Assembly: GCF_964204645.1 (NCBI RefSeq) | Contig: NC_134031.1 | Span: 16,913,807 to 16,977,806, forward strand | From: Tubulanus polymorphus | Taxonomy: Eukaryota > Animalia > Nemertea | Direction of reading: 5' to 3' | Length of the DNA stretch: 64,000 nucleotides | Shown: piece after piece, positions 20,847 through 50,400 of the stretch | Layout: the number at the start of each line of letters is the position of its first letter | Position numbering within the stretch: position 1 is the stretch's first letter | The notes under the pieces: generated by a model | Told to the model about the DNA's origin: nothing | Seen by the model: only the letters and a program-made list of their open reading frames with translations | The model's database searches: none | Translations under genes and position numbers: made by a program

Positions 20847-23792
20847 CTAATCACATTCTCGTCTATACTACTAAAATTTAACATCTCTCTATTATTGTGG
20901 GATTTCTCTCGACTATAACGTGAAGAGTCCTTTCAATGAATACCTTGAAGTCCGAGATATAAACCAGGATTAAACATACTCGGCATACTCCCCTTATCCT
21001 GGATTATATAACTCTGGGTACGCGCCGGCAATTATACTACATGTCCATCTACGTCGTCTTGGCGGTCGTCTATCTGTAAGTTCGATGACTTTTGAGATTG
21101 GATCGCGTCGAAGTGTCCACAAAGCACTTACGCTAACTGCGAGAAATCCTTTCTATATTCGCGCCATCCTAAATAGACATTCACGTTCATTACGATCCTG
21201 TCGATATGGCCCCCTACTTAGAGAACCGCTATGCCAGAATGCTCAGTTGAACAGTCGTGTTGCACGAAGAAAATGCTCATATCTACAAAACCGTTTGGGA
21301 CTTTTTACTCTGCAGCAAGACAACTGGTCGTTTTGTGTTCCCTTAAATAGCATGATTGTAATTTTTACAGACACGCTGCAAAATTTTCCTCAAATCAATA
21401 TTTTTGAATACTGTTTTTATATCTTTAATAAGACTTGATTTTTATCGCTTTAAGTCAAAGTATTTTGAGGCAAATTTCAATTTTTTGTGCGGTTAAGTGC
21501 TTTTGACTCCACCCAAAATTAGAACGGAACAAAGCTCGCGCCTTTGGCAGCTGTCTTTCAATCTTTTCTATTTCATTTGAATTTTTTTTCCAGAAATATT
21601 CGTTAAATCACTCATTTCAAATGATGAATGTTGCTGAAGGCCATGAAGCCCGTAGTCGATTCGAAAAAGAAATCGTCTGCTTTGATCATGGCGGTTTTTT
21701 TATCGTCAATTGCGAACATCGTGTAAACATTCCGATTAATGTCAATTAAAAAACGACAAAACGAACACAAAAGGATAAGTTTTAGCAACATTTTCATCTA
21801 TTGTTCTGAACGACGTAGACACGAGTTTTACAAAGGGATCCACAATTCATGTCTTTCGTCGAGATCGTTGCATTAAATCATTAAATATTCCCCGAGGTCC
21901 CGAGTGAGAGTATACGACACGAAAAATCCCAAATCTTACGAGCGTATATAAGGTTTGGACTCGAGAGTTTCTTCTGGTTAAGCCACAGAGACAGACTTGT
22001 TAACAAATATGCACCCATCATGAGAGACTTAATCTCAGGAGTAAATTAGTTAAAGCAGATACGCCCAGAGTGTCGCATATAGAACTATCAGTTATTTAAC
22101 TAATCAACAGAGGTCACCGACAACTGAAATGAAAACGACAACACCTACGTCACCCATCTTCAAAGGGTAATAGTGATGAAACATCAGATCCTCTCAGGTC
22201 TATTAGTTAATGACAACTACTCTTCACACCCCTTTTATTCTAAACATAATCTGATCATACTGTATACGTACGACCTGTACCACATTTTGAATCATTGTTC
22301 GCTCTTCAGAACTAACTGACAAATCAACATCGAATATTTTATCAAATACACTTTCAGTCGAGATGTCTTTTTTCGGCATAGCAGGCGTTTGATATGAAGT
22401 CGAACGCGGATAGGACTGCTGCAGTATCCTCCGTCGCCTGTTATCTTTTTAATATCGCCTGAAATGTAATGTCGTCGTCAAACCAGAACATGTCAATTAC
22501 GAGAACACCTCTGAAGAAAATTTGATCTTATCCGAGCACTAGAACTTCTTATCAGTGGGTTATTTTATGGTGAATTAGATTCGATCGCTTGACGCACACG
22601 ATATTTTCAAACTTACAGTTTTAAAACGCGGCGATGTAATAGATTGTTTATCGCGGATATTTCGGATTTAGTGCCGTAGTGCTGATCATCTTCGTCAAAT
22701 TAGTTTCTCGTTTCTATAGCGGGTCTCCCTTAGACAGATAATTGCTATTAAACAATCTTATTAAATTCCGTGTCTTACGTCTTACACGGAAGTATCTTCA
22801 ATGCGCGCTATGTACTCTGTGGCTCGGAAATTCTTTTTGGAGTGCATGGTGGGACTAAAAACTATGATAAGCATTTCCCTAATCTGTAAATTGAATAAAT
22901 TAGCTACCAATACTACGGCGCACCTAGTGAGTCAGATACGCTTAGATATTCGCATTCCCGTATTGACGAATTTCATAAACCATAGACATTTTTATAGAAT
23001 TCACATCGACTTTAAAAATACGGAAAATGAGTACGTCAAAACAAATCCGCTTGATCAACGGCCTCGATTTTTTTCGGGCGGAAAACGTCTTTCCACAACA
23101 TTTCCCAATCCATACACGGAAAAGCCCAGTACGTAGTACGCCGTCTTACGTATGGATTACGAGAAAATGGATCGTTCGAGAGAACCCAGATCCAGTGACA
23201 CTAATCTAATCAAATATCACCGATAAAGCCGTTTAATGAACTATTGTTTATGACGTTAGCTGCTCTCTGATGCCAGTTTCGATATGAATGTTTTGCTGAA
23301 GGCGCTTCTCTCTGCGACGCTCGCGTTGTTGTCGTGTAGCGCACGGAACCGACGACTTTCAATGAAACAATTAGAAAAACTTCGTGGATCGTCGGTAATT
23401 TTTTTCACAATTAAGACGTATTCGTATGCGTCAATTGAGATGGTATGGGGAGCGCTTGGTCGGTCGGCAAATGGATGTATTTGACCGGAGAGTTGATTCA
23501 CCCAAAAAGACCACATTACATCTTTTTAGTTATATGAGATTTTACCATTTTTTTGAAAGGCTTTTCTTTTTTTGTGTAACTTACATTTTTCCCACTACCA
23601 AATTTCCTTGGCATAGACTTCAGATAAAAGGTTGGGTGACAGTTCATAGTTGCTAACATGTGATATATTCTGAGAGTTTGTTATCGAGTTCATTGAAAAA
23701 CAACGATATCGACGATTTCATAAGTTAGTCAAAAATATTGAGAATTCTACGAAAATATATTTGCCATCTTCCGTTATTTTCAGACAGCGATC

Positions 23793-24568
23793 ATGACCTA
23801 TTATCGTCAATATATGCAGCTATTGCTGGTCATCGCCAGTATCATACTCATCGCCGCGTATCCTGCTGAAAAAAGGAAGAAGGAATGCGCGTCGTCAAAC
23901 GATCCAGAAATACCCGACCGCAGAGCAAATAATAAAGCAGGTAAAGATGCCTCATCCGCTGCACATGTTGTAGACTACGCAATTTTAGGCCCCCGTGGTT
24001 AATTCGTGTATTTCTTTTTTGGTTTAATCCTAGGTATAGGAGATTTATTTCTGAAGCATCTTCGATTCCGGAATGTAGACGACGAGGAAGAGAAAAAAGA
24101 ACTGGCGAAAGAAATGGGTCTGTTGGACGATAAAAGTAAGTCAAATGATCTATTCGTTTCGTCCGTATTTCTGGTCGCTTCGCTTTTTGAGGGGAAGTTC
24201 TATTTCAAGAAAAATGGCACTTTTTCACAGTGAAAAGCGGCACTTTCCTATTGAAAAAAAAGACATCTAAAATATATGAAGTGCCCGGGTACATAAATCA
24301 TTTCAGAATGGATTACTTATTCATTTTCCAAAAGGCATCATAGAAATTGTATTCAAATTTCGAAAAATCTTGACCAAAATCATTTGACACTGACTTTTTG
24401 AAGGTCACTTTGAAAAGTTTAGAGGGTTTGTTCGTCATTTCAGATTATAGAAAACGCGCTGGAAGTCTGTCAGTTTCGGCACTAGCAGATATGCTTTCAA
24501 ATATGAGACAACGACAACAAAATGGCGGTGGTGTACGCATGCAAACTCTGCGATTCGGTCGCAAATAA
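23793..24568 (+). CDS. RFamide neuropeptide precursor, QRFP/26RFa-like, 124 aa; exons 23793-23940, 24034-24135, 24444-24568
   Basis: Spliced product MTYYRQYMQLLLVIASIILIAAYPAEKRKKECASSNDPEIPDRRANNKAGIGDLFLKHLRFRNVDDEEEKKELAKEMGLLDDKNYRKRAGSLSVSALADMLSNMRQRQQNGGGVRMQTLRFGRK*. It has a hydrophobic signal peptide, an acidic spacer, an RKR convertase site and a C-terminal RF-G-RK amidation signal. An acceptor just before the ATG (23783) implies an upstream non-coding exon. Confidence 0.85.
24180..24430. mobile_element. MITE family K copy filling intron 2 of the neuropeptide gene
   Basis: Collinear similarity with 16915-17160 (GAGGGG.AGTTCT, GTGAAAAG, CTATTGAAAAA, CGAAAAATCT.GACCA). Confidence 0.6.
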
Positions 24569-25895
24569 ACGGCTCCAAGTATCAATTTACTAACGTACTG
24601 TTATTGTTTGAAATATTGTACTAATTCTTATAAGCCTCAATAGTACAACTTCAATTTCGCAACAACGCGACGCAACAGCACCTTCAACTACGAACATGGA
24701 TGAATTTGTTTTTGTCACTTTTGAAAGTCGGAATTTCAATACTTCACGAAACTGAATTTTTCGGTGACGAAATATGTTTTTAAAAGCACCATTGCCGAAT
24801 TCTTATAGCGGAACTGTGTCGTATATTTATCGAGGTTGATAATAAAATCAATATCGTCTTGTAAATAGATCAATAAAGAGTTTTCATACCAAGAAAATTG
24901 AGAAATTTTGTTTTTCATTTTGTGGAGGCCAGTGCGAAAGATTTATCCATCTGAATAACGAATCGGACCGCTCCATATTTGCACACAACATAATACGAAA
25001 AAAAGTTGTTTGGTTTTGGTGAGGTGTGGCAATTCATCAAACTCTAAATCTCGTGTCAAAATCTGTATAGCAACTTAAAAACCCTAACGTGCAGCCCCCA
25101 AATATTACATTGACGGCGATTATGCGAACTAAATCCGACGGGGTAGTCTACCTTTGGCATGCGAGGAATAGGTTAGTTCACATATTCACCGCTTATGTTA
25201 TATATAGAGGCAGCACTTGTCGGTAAAAATCGGACGCAGATACTCCTAATGTGGCATGTGGGAAACGATACCGTACACTGCATCAGTACAAAGTGAAATT
25301 TCTTTTTTTTAGTACCCTAAAGCCGTGTTCTTCTTTTGTCGTAAAATCCATGTTCTATTGTCGGACTCCTTAAGTTTAAATGACTCTTGCTGGACTTGCC
25401 TTTCTTTAATACAATAAACACTGATGGCACCCCTGGACCACTTGATGTTGCTGTAAGTAAACAGCCGAGTTGTGGTTTAGTCATTTCAATGAATTTTTTC
25501 GGATAAGAACAGTTTCTTTGGGATTGTTCAGTCACAGTTGACGCGGATAAGACTGAAGACGTATTATTCTACATCTAACCAAGAACGCTGCCTGTTTGCC
25601 TCGTTTATAGAAAATACTGATTCTTTATTGGCGAAATATTACAATTCATAAAAGGATAGGATAGCAGCAATTTAGTGCCAGTACGGTTTCACGAAATGCG
25701 GGGCATTCCGGTGCGCCAAATTTTGACCGTCAAGTGCTGCTGGAATACTGCCTTAAGCGTCGAATATGTGAACTAAACTGACAAGGATTTTGCTAACTCT
25801 GGCATGCGAGTAATAAAGGGCCCAAGGTCGTCGAGCGAGACAATTAATCTGGACAACATTTAGGATACTTTTTGCGATCAAAACCGATCAAAGCA

Positions 25896-29428: not shown

Positions 29429-32400
29429 TCAAGGCTTGTCCTGGACATGAGCATTATCGGGTGGGAGGGAAACCATGGCTTCGTCGTCGGAAAAACTGAT
29501 TCGTAGTTTATTTTTCAACTGCTCGCTGCTCAAGCCGAGATTTGGAGAAGAGGATTCGTTGATGACGTTCATGTTTTCCTCTTGTCGTTCGTTGTCGGCC
29601 GTCAACGACGTGCGCGGACTCGGGTTCGGCGAACTGCTGATACTACCGCCCGTACGAAGCGACGTGTTCACGCTCAGTTCGTTCTGGTTCAGGCCGGTGC
29701 GCGGTTGAAATTTACAACCGTAAAACGGACTGTGCGACTCGTTTCCGCTGCCCGACGAACTCGAGTTGTACGAGTTGCGATTCGAGTCGGTCGTCGAGGT
29801 TTCGCGCGCCGTTTTCGGCGAACGCGAACTGCTGCGTTTGACACGCGGCGGCGGGTCTAACTTTGGAGCGACGTTCAAATCTAACCGATTACCGGTCGCG
29901 TCGTGCATAGACAGCGGCGTTATCACTTTCCACTGGTAGGCTGGCGATGGATTCTCCGATTCGACAGTTTGTTCGATGGGTTTTAGCTCGGCCAGGTTGT
30001 GGCGCCAGGTCGGTATCGAGCTCAACGGGGAGGCGTGCTTATAGAAAGGATTCGAATTTTCGACGGCAGACACCGAGGCAGCGTTCGCTTGCTGCGTATC
30101 TTTATGACTGTTCGATCGCAACCACAAATGATGAGTATTATTGTTACCTTCCGACTGATTATTGTTACTCATATCCATCAAACTTAATCCCTGTCGATTG
30201 AGGTGAGTATTCTGAGCGGTCGAATCCGGACCCGGTAAACTGAACGACAAACTATCGGACGACATTTCGCGATGGCCGCTGTCCGGTGAGTCGGACGTTT
30301 CCTGTTTAGTGTTCGTGTTTTCGAACATCGCCTGGCGTTCCGGTATGGTCGCCATGTGACTAGCTTCGACATCGGGGAACTCGGGCAGCGTGACCGTCGA
30401 GGCTTGCGGAGTCGTCGGATCAGGTAAAACCGGTATCTGTTGGAATAAATAGAAAGGTTGTTTTTAATGATAATATATTCATTCTTCACTATTGACAGAG
30501 CCTCAGGAAAATATTCAAGGCCGACCTGAAAAAAACAAATCTGAGAAAAAATACATATACTCTTTACGTATTTTTGATCATAGTTAGTGCAGTGAGAATC
30601 ATGCTGTTTTGCTTTGTTGTAATTTGTTGCTGGTGGTAATTTTATAAACGCAGTTTTGTTACATACATGTATAGTCAACGCAAGTGCGATTACGAAAATC
30701 AAAAATACAATTTTTGGTAAAAATGAAGAACATTTTGAGAAAAAAGCTTGCGTCTTTATATCCATGCGCTTATGGTTATGGCATACAGATATAAGTGAAG
30801 TAGATATTTCAGTTTCAGTTGATGAAAGCATTAAATTAAGGTTAGTTCATTTGAGTATAATATGACCAGCTCTCTGACTCAGGGATTATTCGATTTCAGT
30901 AAAATTCAAGCCTACAACTTATGCAAATAAACGCCAAGTCAATTTCGATACTGGATCTATAAATACGATTGTTAAGTTGTTAGTTGCGGTATGAATGTGG
31001 ATAACTCGACTCCATGCGTTTTTACCGTTGAAAATGGTCTCGGTCGACGATGTCGATTCGAATAGACACGCGATATGGTGCCCTCCGAAAACAGAGGCAA
31101 TTCCGACTCCTATAGAGAGCAATATCAGCATTTGAACGTTAGGAAGGAAGCTTCAGCTGTATTGATTACGAGCAATTTTCACACGTTACATCAGACTGTG
31201 ATGTTTAGAATATATATAATTTGTGAGATGTTACTCTTCAGACTGTGTGAGCGTTATAATTTTTAACAGTAATACAGACCTGTGCTGGCATGCGTAGTAA
31301 CATGTCTGCGGACGGGATCGTGCCATTCACCTTCAATTCCAGCTCTTGTAACTTCCCGACGAGCGTATTAATCGTTTCTAACAGTTCGCGATTATTCAAC
31401 ATGAGTTGATGTATACGAGCCTTGAAACAAATCCGACATAAAAAATTAAGTTCGGTGCTAATTCACAACGCGCGCGAATTTCCATAAAAATCGATGTTTT
31501 CACTTACCTGCGCTTCGATTCTGGCCGCAGCTTCCGCGGCTAGCTGGTCCTTCAGCAGATGCACCTGCGCAATCGCGACCTGCGTCTGCTGTACCTGTTG
31601 ATCTAATTGGTGCCGCATCAGCTGCATTTGATGATGTGTGCTCAAAGGAGTCGTTCCATTCGGCAGTATGTCGCACAAGAGCTCAGGTGAACCGAGTGGT
31701 GAACTAATCGTTCCTGCCGCAACCTATAAGATAAAATATTTTCACTGATTGAAAATAGCCGCGATCACACGGAGACGATCTGACCCGGGCCAAATTGGCA
31801 CGGATCAGAGCCAAATCAAATTTGGCCCGTGCATAATTAGAAAGCGCGTTCACACACAAACCACCACTCGATATTAAACAATACTTAAACATAATAATAC
31901 TTAAAGCGAAGTGAGTCACTCCAGTTGCAATTCACACGCAATAATTTGACCAGAGCTAAAGTTTGGCCGGGCTTAGTAAGGACGCCCAATTCAGCCCGGG
32001 CAAAAATGCTTGTGTGATTGTATTTTGTTGTAGTATTTATTTTCATTTGTTTGTCACATTAATACAACATTATTATATAATAAACGGTGAAAAAATGTAC
32101 AAGAAAATGCGGGCTACACGTAGAGATCACAAGGATCAATCGGACACAATGATTGTGGCTAATGATTTGAATACATGGTTTGACTGTGAAATGTCGCCGT
32201 TTCGTTTTAGGAATATACCTGTGGTTTAGCCTGTTGAACTTGGTTCAACAGTTGCTGCGCTTGTTTAAATGCTTCTTCGGTTTGAGCAGAAATACTTTTA
32301 TCCTCTTGAGTCGGAGTCGGCTCCGATTCGTAATTACTATCGGGAGATGCTTTCTCTGTAAGAGAATATAAACGAGAACAGTTATCACACAGTTCGGATA

Positions 32401-35400: not shown

Positions 35401-38400
35401 GATCGTTGTATGAATATATACTCGATACAGACCGGATAATGAACGATGAATAACTAGAATAGAATAGTATCTGTGCCGGGGCGGATCCAGGGGGAATCGT
35501 ACGAGTCCATCAAATATTTTTGAGTGCCCTTTTTCATTTTTTCAACAAAGATAGTTGGTGCATTTCAGTGCGGTCGTGCCCTTAATATTGCCTCTTTGGA
35601 CATCGAAGTGCCTTTTGGGATGTTCGTCAAAATTGGCCTCTTGCTTCTGCTTTGTAATGACGCTAGCATAAAAATTTCATAAGTAACAGCGTTACTCGTT
35701 TTAATGAATTGACATTATAATCGCAGAGTTGCAGTTTTCGAAGCAGCACGCGATGATAATATTTGTTGGCTGAATATGGTTTAATCTTAAGAAACGAAGC
35801 CAAAACACCTTCATATTTCACTCAGTGCTTGAAGGACTTCATTGAGTCGAATTTATACCATTCGATACCTCACTGTTCAGGATGCCCTTTCAGTGCTGAC
35901 ATCAATACGCGAAAGTGCTGGAGATGATTTGAAAATTTAAAAAAATTCCACCGCAGCGCGTTGAATAACAGGTATACCGCTATAGTACATCGTATCATTA
36001 GTTACTAACATTACCCCATGTTTGACAGGTGCTGCCATCTTTCAATAGAGATTAGAACTAATTTCTAATAACATCAATACACCATGGTGCGGCGTACTAG
36101 CAAAGTCCATCACCGATTTATACACTTTGTTGTGGTGTAAACGCACTGAAAGGGTTAAGTCTTTGAAATATAGCACCACAGGTATGGAATACATTTCCCG
36201 ATATATGAAATACTTGATGATTTTCTGCTATGTGTATATAATGGGCCTCTGAAAAGTCTGTTTTCATTTTCTGAAGAACTGCTGAAAACTCTTACTGGAT
36301 ATTGAATGACATTGTGATAACGTGCTCACGTATATAAATGCATTTACAACTCCACGAATCACATTAGAATCAAAATGAAAATTGTCAGTTACTTTCACTT
36401 CAGCGCATAAAAAAGCTCTATTTCTCGCATAAAATGCTTTTTGAATAATTCGATAAAGCTATCTTTACCACACAGCACCGCGCATCTGCTCAATAGAAAA
36501 TAGAAAACATCTTCTGCTTATGATAGATTTTTCGTGTTTTTAAATTGTAGCAGGTCAATGGAGGTTTGAGAACGCTTCGAAACTTTTATTCTCGAAATCA
36601 ATGCGGCTTTCGCTTTCTGGCTTATCGATGGAATTCAAATGTAGTTCTTTTTTAAATCTATAGACGCGACTCGGGAAGGCACTCCACGTTTTCGGATAAA
36701 GATAGAAGCTGTTGAAAATTAATAATACGTTTCGTAAAATCGAAAGGTCGCGTGGTGGTACCCAATAATATTTGTTCAGCGACGGAAAAAGCCAAAGGGA
36801 CAAAATGCTAATGGACAATTAGGCAATCGATATCGAAGGAAGATAAATATTCGCTGAAAGCAAAGTCTTGTATAATAGCTTACCTGCCGGGCAAGGCTTC
36901 GCCCAAACAAGTAATAAAACATATCCTGAAAATATTCACGAATTCAGTAAAAGACGCTAGGGAAACAGAAGGCTTTTTACCAGGCGTCGAATTAACGACG
37001 TCGTTCTTCGAGTAGGATATTACGCCGGTTTTGAGAATCGCTTTTTATGAGCGCGGATTTAACGGCAACACGCGAAACATCTACTCAATCGAGGACTCGT
37101 TCAACTCCTCATTAAAAGTTGTTTTTGAAGAACGCGAACGATGACACGCTTTCAAGTTTTAAATCGAACATGAAAACCATGGATCAATCGAAGGGAAGTC
37201 TCTTCTAAAGCGAGGAGCAAGCGTTTATGCACGACGTCAAGGAATTAGAAGCGCATACTCTTTATGGAATTGTTGAAAAAGGAAATTGATGCAAACTATA
37301 AGGTATCGGATGCCCAGATTAATGAAGTTGGACCTATGTGAGTGTGTGTGAAATCATCCAGTAGAAGATTGTCTTCTTTTTCCATTGCGCGAAGCTGCTT
37401 CTTACCTTTTTCTTTTTCTGCAAGATGACTTTCACTCCGGACGTGGAAACTGCTAAAGTCACCTTCTTCTTTTTGATCGCTTTCGCCTTGAACTCGTACT
37501 GCAATGGATAAACACGCGGACTGAATTATTAAAGGGTTTACGCGACGTTCGAACGACTTTTAAATGAAATTTAAAAAAATCTAAAGCAATAATTAGTATG
37601 ATTCAATTCTTCTGTTACATTCAAGCAATAAATCAAAAATGAGTAACTTTAAATTATAAAGAGATAAAGCCCTAACTCAATGTGAACAAGAAAACTTAAT
37701 TGAAAGTTTATCAACGCCTTGAAAAATAGCACACATATATTGCTTAATATTGTCGACAATGAATAATATGATATAAATTACATAATATCTATAATCAATG
37801 AAGTTATTATGTATTTGAATATAAGGCAAACTCAACCAGTGGCAAATTCCACCATTGGCAAACTCAACCAGTGGCAAATTCTACCATTGGCAAACTCAAT
37901 CAGTGGCAAACTCAACCAGTGGCAAATTCCACCCTTGGCAAACTCAACCATTGGCAAACTCAACCAGTGGCAAATTCTACCATTGGCAAACTCAACCAGT
38001 GGCAAATTCTACCATTGGCAAACTAAACCAGTGGCAAACTCAACCAGTTGCAAATTCTACCATTGGCAAACTCAATCAGTGGCAAACTCAACCAGTGGCA
38101 AACTAAACCAGTGGCAAATTCTACCATTGGCAAACTCAATCAGTGGCAAACACTCAAGGAATACACAACATCGTCTACACAGAAAACAATGACAATATCG
38201 TTACAATTCCGTGATATCTGAAATCCTGTGAGACGTCGGAACGATAGCTTACAAATTACCCGAGTGGAAATGATTTATAACTTTCTCCCTCTCGATGAAA
38301 GGTAGAAATAAGATGGATAGGTGTACGCGCTGTAGCATTATTGCTGCTGAAGAATCCTGATTCTCTGGAGGCAAGTTGTTCTCATCAATTAACCACCTAC

Positions 38401-47400: not shown

Positions 47401-50400
47401 GCAGGACGATGCTGATGTCACGATGGTTAAACAGCGGTGGGTCATCATCTCCCGATGGATCGCAGGGCCGAGTCGTGTCGGGTACGTAGAACACGTACAA
47501 GCGCCACCGGCGCGCGATATTACGATCGCTGAATACCGATCAGGCTTTTTAATCAGCTAATGGCCAGGTCAATGCGGAAATTGCCAGGATGCCATCGGTT
47601 AAAAAGCGAATTGTGAATCTCATCCTGATATGGCAATCCGGAACATTATATTTCATTAGCCGCGATCACTTGAGCACTTTCGGCCCAAAGCAACTGTTCA
47701 CAAGGGTGCCAAATGGACCCGTGCCTGTTTGGCCCTACCCAAATTCCTATTGGTCATAATGGTTCGTGTGAACTGGTGCTGGAAGTGATTTGATTCACTT
47801 CGCTTTGTTCAAGCATTGTTTAGTATCGAGTGAATGGTTTAAGCGTGAATGCGCTCTCTCTAATTAGACACAGACCAAATATGACTCGGGCCTAACCCAT
47901 GGCAAATCTGCTAGGGCCGAGTAATCTGCGTGTGATCACGGCTATTAATATTCGCCAGAAGTTCTACATATCTATTTCAAAAATGAATATTTTTTTCGGA
48001 TAAAACCCAATTTCAAGGCCCACAGATACTTATGATCAATTGTAAATCATGGTTGCACTTAAGGATCTGATTTCATAATAGGTTAATACTGTAACCGTGG
48101 GCAACATTTCTAGAGATTACTGTCATTAGCACTCAGCGTCTGATAATTGCTACTGTTACTTATCCGACTATTGATAACGATTTATGCCTAGGGGTAACTT
48201 CAATACCCAAAATAGATAAACGCAGTTATTATCATCAGACAAATGACGATGGACCTCTGGCATCCGGCATATCAACAAGCGAGAGAAAATTCGTACACTT
48301 CCTCTTAAGCTTTAATTATGTTTTTCGATTGATAGGGAGTTCGATGAGTGCGTCGACGATGCGGGGCTCGGTATTTTAGAAATGCGCGATACGACACAAT
48401 CGGAAGTCGGTCGATCTGAATCGTCGCTCGTTAACTATCGACGGAATGTCATCCACGCGTTAGCGTCAATTGTCGGCCTTTTTTTTCGTATTTTCGAATA
48501 TCGCTTCGCGTTCGTCGCGATCTCTCGGCTTCGGGCGTCGAACGAAATTAAATTTTTGCATATATTTGCGAACGACGTCCCGCGGGCTTTAAAACGAATG
48601 GAAAGAATACAATGTCGTTGATCACCGCGACTTCAAATTTTATTCCGAAGATGAATCGAATGAGAGCGAAGTGAACGAGGCCTTGAGATAGAAAATTGAA
48701 TATTAAAAGATATAGAAAGTTGGAGAGATATTTGGAAAGCGAGTTTGATGCAGGGAAACATTGGATACAGGAGAAGGAAACATGTTTCCGAGTGTTTCCG
48801 TATGTGGTGTACATTTTCAAAAAAAAAAAATGGTTTTGGGAAACAATAATTCCAAGATCAGATATCCATAATTCTGTGTTTCTATGTTGTGCACATTTAT
48901 GAGAAATAAGAAATATGGTTTCCGAGATGAAAAATCCTTAATTTTGTGTTTCTCTGTGTCGTCTGCATTTAAGAGAAACAAGAAACATTGTTTCCGTGAT
49001 CAAGCATCCTTAATTTTGTGTTTCTCTGTGTCGTCTGCATTCACAAGAAACAAGAAACATGGTTTCCGTGATCAAAATTCCTTGATTTTGTGTTTCTCTG
49101 CGTTGCGTGCACGAGAAATGAGAAACACCTGTAATCAAACATGTTTAATTCGGTACTTCCCTGTGTCGAGTGCGTTAGGCTTTAAAGGGCAGAGTTGGAA
49201 AGAGAAGAGAGAAGGAAAGAGACGAAAGGAATGACACGTAAGGAATCAAACATAAGGAAAGAGAGTAAGGAATGAGAGGTAAGGAATGAGAGGTAAGGAA
49301 TGAGAGGAAAGGAAGGAGACGTAAGGAATGAGAGGTAAGGAATGAGACGTAAGGAATGAGACATTAGGAATGACAGGTAAGGAATGACAGGTAAGGAATG
49401 ACAGGTGAGAATGAGACGTAAGGAATGAGACGTAACTAATGAGAGGTAAGGAATGACTGGTAAGGAATGACAGGTAAGGAATGAGAGGGATGTAGAGGTA
49501 TGATGAAAGAGTGAGACGAGAGAAGGAAGCCGGGCACCGGACGTCGGATGATGATGTGATTTTGTCGGAGCTCATTTCACGGAAACTCGTACGTGATTTT
49601 AACGAGCGGTACAATCGCGTATAACGTCGTCGTCAAACCAACTGAAAAATGATTTCCTACGAGGCATTGTCGCGTGTAATTACCTAATCATACATGCGCT
49701 TTTATCTGCTCTCATCTGCCTCCGAGTGTTTCGTCAATTACACTGGAAAATAACCTGATTAACTAACGCGGGCGAAAAACGAAAAGCCCGTCATCAAAAT
49801 TCACTTGTCCGATCTTAATACGCTGGCGGTGATTTACAAGCCATCGCGCCCATACCTGCAACAACATAGATAATTATACGCGGAATACTAAATTTAGCTC
49901 GTTCGGATTGGGATGGTTTCAACAAAAAAATCCAATCATTAGTTCTATCGGCGACAGAGTGATTTTCCAGGAAAGTCATTTGAACTACGATGTACCAGGA
50001 AGGTTGGCGTTCGTGTTATAAGTATGCATGAATATTCGGATAAAATCGTTGAAGTAATTGTGTACAAAATAACGTATCAAATGATCAATAGAGTCAGATT
50101 ATCTACGGACACAATATGAAAGCGGCTGGAGATGATTGCTATCTTAATTACATGTTATGGAACATGAATCTTTTTTGATGAACATCGATGTTCCAACTAG
50201 GAAATCATTTATGGATGAATTTATAACGTTCTCAGTTTGTTCGAAGCTTGTAGTGGCTAAGAGTGGTTCGAGCATCAAGGATTCATGGGTTGAATCCTCG
50301 GCTAGTACCAGATTACCGCATAACGTTATCAAAACTGATCTAAATCTAGTCCATTCCAAGCGTTTATACTAACAAGTTTATAGGTCTAGTTTATATGTCC

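Follow-up and report, generated by a model that had tools for sequence, protein, structure and literature searches.

SLRFamide precursors are short neuropeptide precursors that have been described separately in annelids and in bivalves. The Platynereis SLRFa precursor was listed among those with recognizable orthologues solely in annelids (Conzelmann et al. 2013, PMC3890597), an annelid-specific status repeated in 2020 for the SLRFamide of Urechis unicinctus (PMC7737342), and Cragi-SLRFamide of the oyster Crassostrea gigas was termed bivalve-specific in 2021 (PMC8398477). For the scallop Patinopecten yessoensis, the 'LRF' peptides GQDLRKLILKKLRF and QISDSPSVRMPSLRFamide were proposed as new RFamides, and the same authors proposed that an internal LRFR block gives rise to a peptide (PMC5996578). 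Mass spectrometry in the oyster recovered truncated forms, including the conserved C-terminal peptide, and expression there is mainly larval (PMC8398477). None of the papers found to name the family reports a receptor for it. Here we describe a gene in a 64,000-nucleotide stretch of the genome of the palaeonemertean ribbon worm Tubulanus polymorphus (contig NC_134031.1, positions 16,913,807 to 16,977,806 of the forward strand; hereafter the window, to which coordinates refer) that encodes a short precursor with one long, presumably amidated LRF peptide at its C-terminus. On comparison of sequences, we consider this locus to be the nemertean orthologue of the lophotrochozoan SLRFamide precursor, with a probability of roughly 0.85.

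The gene (LOC141909126) lies on the + strand and encodes 124 residues in three coding exons, ending with RKR, a 33-residue peptide that closes in LRF, and G-RK. The first coding exon (23784..23940) opens with nine nucleotides of 5′ untranslated region (UTR) after an AG acceptor, starts translation at the ATG at 23793 and ends in codon phase 1 before the donor GT at 23941; it specifies a signal peptide (MTYYRQYMQLLLVIASIILIAA...) and the start of a spacer with KRKK and RR sites. The second (24034..24135), between an acceptor AG at 24032-24033 and a donor GT at 24136, contributes an internal block, G-I-G-D-L-F-L-K-H-L-R-F-R-N-V, followed by an acidic spacer. After intron 2 (24136..24443; 308 bp, GT..AG), the coding part of the third coding exon (24444..24568; acceptor AG at 24442-24443, stop codon at 24566-24568) gives, in order, N-Y-RKR, the 33-residue peptide, a Gly that would serve as amide donor, R-K and the stop. 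The predicted mature peptide, AGSLSVSALADMLSNMRQRQQNGGGVRMQTLRF(-NH2), occupies 24458..24556, between the RKR and the terminal G-RK-stop. The 3′ UTR (24569..24814) is drawn as far as the RNA-like contig described below reaches, and AATAAA motifs lie downstream of the end of that contig at 24841 and 24872. A search of the 268-Mb host genome with the exon-3 peptide found a single copy and no paralogue.

Two runs, X1 and X2, were compared over 22800-25800. X1 covers the entire interval at approximately 30x, as expected of DNA-like material, and lacks the joint that connects 24135 to 24444, whereas X2 coverage is limited to 23784-23920, 24032-24135 and 24444-24814, plus a repeat. A 492-nucleotide X2 contig (depth 31) runs through 24032-24135, skips the 308 bases bounded by GT..AG and resumes over 24444-24814; its first 17 letters, together with an ambiguous AG, match the end of exon 1. 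Because X2 coverage is exon-only and includes a splice joint, we take this run to be RNA. A second X2 contig, beginning at the 23784 acceptor, has 103 leading letters that match nowhere in 22800-25800; at least one additional 5′-UTR exon therefore lies upstream of 22800. This agrees with the Lineus longissimus gene discussed below, in which the gene's start lies some 10 kb upstream of the first exon that codes. The Tubulanus gene is transcribed, its splicing follows the prediction, and it has three coding exons plus at least one non-coding 5′ exon.

These data bear directly on the original prediction, made from the letters of the window alone, of a hidden, spliced neuropeptide-precursor gene in what proved to be a protostome. 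The existence of that gene is confirmed by its exact coordinates, by the X2 splice joint and by an identical RefSeq protein, and the check proposed for a spliced transcript is answered by the X2 contig with the exact 24135-to-24444 GT..AG joint. Its description as a three-exon gene holds for the coding exons and fails for the gene as a whole, which has one or more further exons in the 5′ UTR. The proposed layout, with signal peptide, spacer, dibasic site and a single C-terminal, presumably amidated 33-residue RF-Gly peptide at 24458-24556, stands.

Several sequence differences were seen in the same interval. The assembly and the runs differ at 23921 (C>T; codon 43, Arg, CGC>TGC if on the coding strand as read), probably an allelic variant carried by the animals sampled, and both X2 contigs break at this C/T polymorphism. 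The runs also depart from the assembly by one base each at 22855, 23022, 23641, 23647 and 23749. Intron 2 contains a high-copy dispersed repeat (24184-24416), also present in X2, over which X1 depth exceeds 1000 within 24113-24415 (summed, 800-1600, against approximately 30 in the flanks); this repeat yields many partial contigs and false 'joints'.

Exons were searched separately, and the full-length protein used in our comparisons is a database entry. When 1.84 billion cluster representatives were searched by phmmer with the exon-3 translation (40 residues), two proteins came back, both nemertean, which we call P0001 and P0002. P0001 (124 residues; XP_074655610.1/XP_074655611.1) is from Tubulanus polymorphus and agrees letter for letter with the spliced model, the first coding exon giving residues 1-49 and the third giving residues 85-124 at 100% identity. 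RefSeq names XP_074655610 "uncharacterized"; the gene is already predicted there, without a family name. P0002 (XP_064650097.1; 128 residues) is from Lineus longissimus and was found with E=4.5e-5 over 40 residues. The two proteins are 43% identical overall, with invariant blocks L-K-H-L-R-F-R, S-A-L-A-D, M-R-Q and R-M-Q-T-L-R-F-G-R; the nine C-terminal residues are identical in these two distant nemerteans, and RMQTLRF is invariant. Both intron positions are also common to the two genes, the Lineus junctions ...PKSG/GLSG... and ...EEPGK/EYSKR... (slashes mark exon ends) corresponding to ...NNKAG/IGD... and ...LLDDK/NYRKR... in Tubulanus. In a tblastx comparison of the Lineus locus with the window, the peptide exon was the sole match, with no conserved neighbours.

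The resemblance to SLRFamide precursors extends over two separate blocks. The internal block reads GIGDLFLKHLRFRNV in Tubulanus, GLSGLLLKHLRFREL in Lineus, GLGSLLLKNLRFRDL in Platynereis and Capitella and LILKKLRFRDL in bivalves, and the Tubulanus and annelid versions are identical at 9 of 15 positions (counted by eye). It follows the family pattern ..G-x-G/S-x-L-[FLI]-L-K-[HNK]-L-R-F-R-[DEN]-[LV].., and the C-terminus likewise follows the family pattern V-[RK]-[LM]-x-[ST]-LRF-Gly-basic: the peptide ends GVRMQTLRF-G-RK-stop in Tubulanus, GVKLQSLRF-G in annelids and VRM[PS]SLRF-G in bivalves, so that all three phyla retain V-[RK]-[LM]-x-[ST]-LRF. The entries compared, all from PMC8557429, are 'SLRFamide_platynereis_dumerilli' (...NGLGSLLLKNLRFRDL...KR-GDMSVNELAQILNHLKARNVDGGVKLQSLRF-GRRRR), Capitella CapteP226322 (...NGLGSLLLKNLRFRDL...KR-STVSVSQLAALLHNLRSRDLDEEGVKLQSLRF-GK) and three bivalve proteins from Patinopecten, Modiolus and Bathymodiolus (...LILKKLRFRDL...KR-...VAALLS.LK.RQ.DSP.VRM.SLRF-G). 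Aligned by hand without gaps, the Tubulanus and Capitella peptides are identical at 15 of 32 positions, the matches comprising S-V-S, L-A, L, N, R, R, G-V, Q and L-R-F, and a [KR]-x-[KR] triplet (R-Q-R in Tubulanus) occupies the same mid-peptide place in all family members.

The precursors are also built alike. Each runs from a signal peptide through a ..L-x-L-K-x-LRFR-[DEN]-[LV] block and an acidic spacer to KR and a single peptide of about 31-35 residues at the extreme C-terminus, and the Tubulanus precursor, like those of the family (about 120-145 residues), is short, carries a signal peptide and has no Pfam domain. There are differences: Tubulanus ends in TLRF where the listed members end in SLRF, its internal block has His rather than Asn or Lys, it has a Gly-Gly-Gly hinge, its 124 residues compare with about 130-145, and, as a nemertean, it adds a third phylum, one for which the family had gone unlisted. 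Since both blocks and the whole layout are shared, the resemblance to SLRFamide precursors is most unlikely to be chance, as far as alignment of these sequences by eye can tell.

The same match lowers the novelty of the find. The original prediction had itself named prior cataloguing of the precursor as something that would reduce its novelty, and the precursor matches the catalogued SLRFamide family in both conserved blocks. The nemertean member itself is new to neuropeptide listings, because ..QTLRF, ..SLRFG and ..LRFR[DEN].. are all absent from the proteins catalogued for nemerteans, brachiopods and phoronids in supplement files 2 and 3 of Thiel et al. 2021 (PMC8557429).

Several points weigh against the assignment to the SLRFamide family or against parts of the gene model on which it draws. 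The annelid and bivalve sequences were taken from the PMC8557429 supplement and aligned by eye. At E<=0.001, phmmer found nothing among the 1.84 billion representatives beyond the two nemertean proteins. The Lineus mass-spectrometry tables in PMC8557429 contain no ...MQTL... peptide. The N-terminal signal sequence is recognized from a hydrophobic stretch, LLLVIASIILIAA, after a charged start, with cleavage judged by eye, and the identity of X2 as RNA is inferred from its coverage pattern, no run being on record as RNA. Other searches covered protein, profile and structure databases. Three word-index protein searches gave no relatives beyond the same two nemertean proteins; Pfam-A hmmscan turned up nothing relevant for any exon translation or full protein, with no family reaching E<=1 for P0001 and P0002 or E<=10 for the exon-3 peptide; and a PDB sequence search with the peptide gave no match at E<=10. 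In favour of a neuropeptide precursor of some kind, P0001 has generic neuropeptide-precursor neighbours in ESM-Atlas (DH31, NPFF, myosuppressin, gastrin and QRFP); the 40-residue exon piece gave weak, mixed leads there.

Processing would follow the standard prohormone route. The signal peptide would be removed, prohormone convertases would cleave behind RKR88 and ahead of the two basic residues at the C-terminus, a carboxypeptidase would trim the C-terminal basic residues, and peptidylglycine alpha-amidating monooxygenase would convert Gly122 to leave a 33-residue ...TLRF-amide. A further cut at the mid-peptide R-Q-R is possible and would yield a 14-mer, QNGGGVRMQTLRF-amide, whose first residue is Gln; shortened forms are known from the oyster. 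An AlphaFold model of low confidence (mean predicted local distance difference test score, pLDDT, 55) places one helix over residues 2-22, in the signal region, and another over residues 82-109, and leaves the G-G-G-V-R-M-Q-T-L-R-F tail free. Because the C-terminus is invariant and the N-terminus variable, the part that activates the receptor is most probably the amidated C-terminal end, as it is in the RFamides that act on rhodopsin-type G-protein-coupled receptors (GPCRs), and the invariant amidated tail points to a receptor of the rhodopsin-type RFamide class. Across the three phyla, the internal block (L-F-L-K-H-L-R-F-R-N-V, 24040-24084, P0001 residues 52-66) is no less conserved than the beginning of the terminal peptide, and its LRF end has no following Gly; it may give a second ...LRF peptide, one without an amide, or may serve as a signal for sorting or processing.

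Which known signalling system such a peptide might belong to is a separate matter from its family. The original prediction had assigned it to QRFP/26RFa, and extended to the whole family, that reading makes the SLRFamides the protostome orthologues of QRFP, acting via the orphan lophotrochozoan QRFP-type receptor. Receptors of the QRFP type occur in lophotrochozoans, nemerteans included, as orphans (PMC4062910, PMC8557429), so that the cognate receptor type of the vertebrate and amphioxus peptides does occur in Nemertea. The layout is also suggestive: like QRFP/26RFa, the Tubulanus precursor is short and bears a single long C-terminal RFamide with a helical middle and a basic patch, a cut at R-Q-R would expose an N-terminal Gln, and a QRFP cluster stands at rank 13 (0.90) among the language-model neighbours. 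The sequence itself does not follow. Neither the exon-3 peptide nor P0001 or P0002 matches the Pfam profile RFamide_26RFa (PF11109), and the PDB search was equally empty. The Smith-Waterman score of the Tubulanus peptide against 26RFa is 16, with shuffles at 16.5 +/- 3.4 (p=0.57; the 26RFa string is that of the original prediction, unverified). The Lineus peptide does score above shuffles against this quoted string (p=0.003), but that alignment sets an internal GFR on the FRF end of 26RFa and leaves the amidated ends unaligned. Chordate QRFP-type peptides are characterized by 25 residues, Leu4, Ala8, Lys18, Gly20 and a C-terminal RFamide (Elphick & Mirabeau 2014, PMC4062910), whereas the Tubulanus peptide has Met, Val, Met and Met at offsets 5, 7, 17 and 21 from the amidated Phe, where the quoted 26RFa carries those residues; the RF-amide alone is shared, and matching the conserved Leu/Ala/Lys/Gly positions would need two indels. 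It has 33 residues rather than 25-26 or 43, and its C-terminus is QTLRF where that of 26RFa is GGFSFRF, the pentapeptides being QTLRF and FSFRF. Moreover, the precursor is unreported in brachiopods and phoronids, although both possess the receptor. With no PF11109 match, different residues at the conserved positions and a similarity to 26RFa at the level of shuffled sequence, the QRFP/26RFa assignment is not upheld, and QRFP orthology of the family now appears unlikely.

Vertebrate kisspeptin also has an LRF-amide end, one that the Tubulanus peptide shares, and the kisspeptin-type receptors of lophotrochozoans are likewise orphans, which raises the question of whether the family supplies the ligand that the GPR54/kisspeptin-type receptor of lophotrochozoans still lacks. 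Here the phyletic pattern fits well: kisspeptin/GPR54-type receptors are found in nemerteans, molluscs and annelids and not in brachiopods or phoronids, QRFP-type receptors being present in all five phyla (PMC8557429 and its tables), and the first three are exactly the phyla with known SLRFamide precursors. This agreement is based on incomplete transcriptomes, however, and the features quoted for kisspeptins (PMC4062910), a conserved residue six positions from the amidated end and Phe/Trp at three or four, differ from what the peptide has, namely Arg at six and Thr/Gln at three/four, so that the L-R-F-amide end is all that is shared. We regard a kisspeptin-type identity as improbable, slightly more so than QRFP orthology. 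The broader proposition, that the SLRFamide family supplies the endogenous ligand of one of these orphan bilaterian RFamide-type receptors, whether QRFP-type or kisspeptin/GPR54-type, seems somewhat more probable than either, yet still doubtful.

A quite different kinship is suggested by the other end of the peptide. The original prediction had remarked that its start recalls ELH and CRH peptides, and of the resemblances it named this is the one that exceeds shuffles for the Tubulanus peptide, in comparison with the host's own DH44/ELH gene. That gene is a single-exon ORF (open reading frame) of 145 residues (L003:1213-1650, equal to G000:C8:5981000-5981437, + strand) that was found via the Pfam ELH profile (E=0.022) and ends KR-SDGSLSIVGSLDALADMISAQEAKKLQNQLKANKMRLMRL-GKR; the Pfam CRF profile gave nothing in the host genome. 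The host DH44/ELH sequence differs at several residues from the Tubulanus polymorphus transcript in PMC8557429 (GGGSLSIVGSLDALTDMLSAQQARKF...), and a degenerate DNA pattern built from that 2021 'T. polymorphus' DH44/ELH transcript found no match in the host genome with up to two mismatches; in view of the residue differences, the 2021 transcriptome and the genome may therefore represent different populations or cryptic species. BLASTP of P0001 against the host DH44/ELH precursor gave a colinear alignment from cleavage site to amidation site (E=0.006, in one comparison), and the similarity exceeds that of shuffles for both the Tubulanus peptide (p=0.0008) and the Lineus peptide (p=0.005).

These results might be taken to mean that the gene is a divergent CRH/DH44/ELH paralogue, a long helical peptide for a class B (secretin-type) receptor whose RFamide end is incidental. 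The peptides are of similar length and have in common the strings GSLS[VI]...ALADM[LI]S, the first at the start and the second in a helix segment; the annelid SLRFamide starts MSVNEL and VSVSQL resemble [LI]S[VI]N..L of ELH/DH44; oyster ELH peptides end ..LFRY-amide; and the nearest language-model clusters are DH31. Yet P0001 and P0002 match neither Pfam CRF (PF00473) nor ELH (PF02323), BLASTP of the Lineus protein against the host DH44/ELH precursor gives no alignment, and the alignment of the two peptides requires two 4-residue gaps. Conservation in the SLRFamide peptides peaks C-terminally and is lowest N-terminally, the N-terminus differing even between nemerteans, which is the reverse of class-B ligands, in which the N-terminus activates. 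The S-V-N start is absent from bivalve members, the Tubulanus end is an RF-amide rather than a hydrophobic amide, and the LRFR block of SLRFamide precursors is missing in DH44/ELH precursors. We consider the paralogue reading about as improbable as the kisspeptin one and treat the ELH/DH44 resemblance as a weak signal, which may reflect a deep kinship or, alternatively, amphipathic helices that have converged. Two other families of long amidated peptides with an R-F/Y end on a short precursor were compared and rejected. The peptide has no FWQ..GPLPVETR motif of NKY, and, as the original prediction had correctly judged, NPY/NPF fits poorly, with no RPRF end, no proline-rich start and no Pfam Hormone_3 match.

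Finally, the gene might have no signalling role at all, its product being a small protein, secreted or without function, in which the dibasic and Gly-basic sites go unprocessed. Such a view can appeal to the lack of nemertean peptide evidence, the "uncharacterized" RefSeq entry and the low confidence of the AlphaFold model. Against it, conservation between distant nemerteans and across phyla covers the cleavage site, the amidation signal and the C-terminal nonapeptide, the oyster C-terminal peptide has been seen by mass spectrometry, and Pfam finds no folded domain; we think it very improbable, more so than the QRFP, kisspeptin and CRH/DH44/ELH readings. Membership of the SLRFamide family is the reading that we retain.

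Elsewhere in the window, a Ser/Asn-rich frame of 308 residues lies open on the - strand (29429-30355); it matches no family in Pfam at E<=1 and is probably a large exon of a neighbouring gene. The ORFs at 37809-38192, 48884-49234 and 49246-49614 are repetitive because they coincide with three tandem arrays, of 16 bp x 20 (37825-38151), 72 bp x 3.5 (48850-49100) and 14 bp x 20 (49212-49486), respectively.

SLRFamide precursors have twice been called lineage-specific, as annelid in 2013 and 2020 and as bivalve in 2021, and Nemertea can now be added to their range. Taken together, the annelid, bivalve and nemertean precursors would form one family that was already present when annelids, molluscs and nemerteans last shared an ancestor. 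The result provides no evidence for an ancestral bilaterian QRFP system. If the family does prove to be the endogenous ligand of a QRFP-type or kisspeptin/GPR54-type receptor, protostomes would have in it a counterpart to one of the vertebrate RFamide systems. For the present it constitutes a modest but useful annotation, and it offers an orphan candidate ligand for the orphan QRFP-type, kisspeptin-type and FMRFamide-type-1-related receptors.

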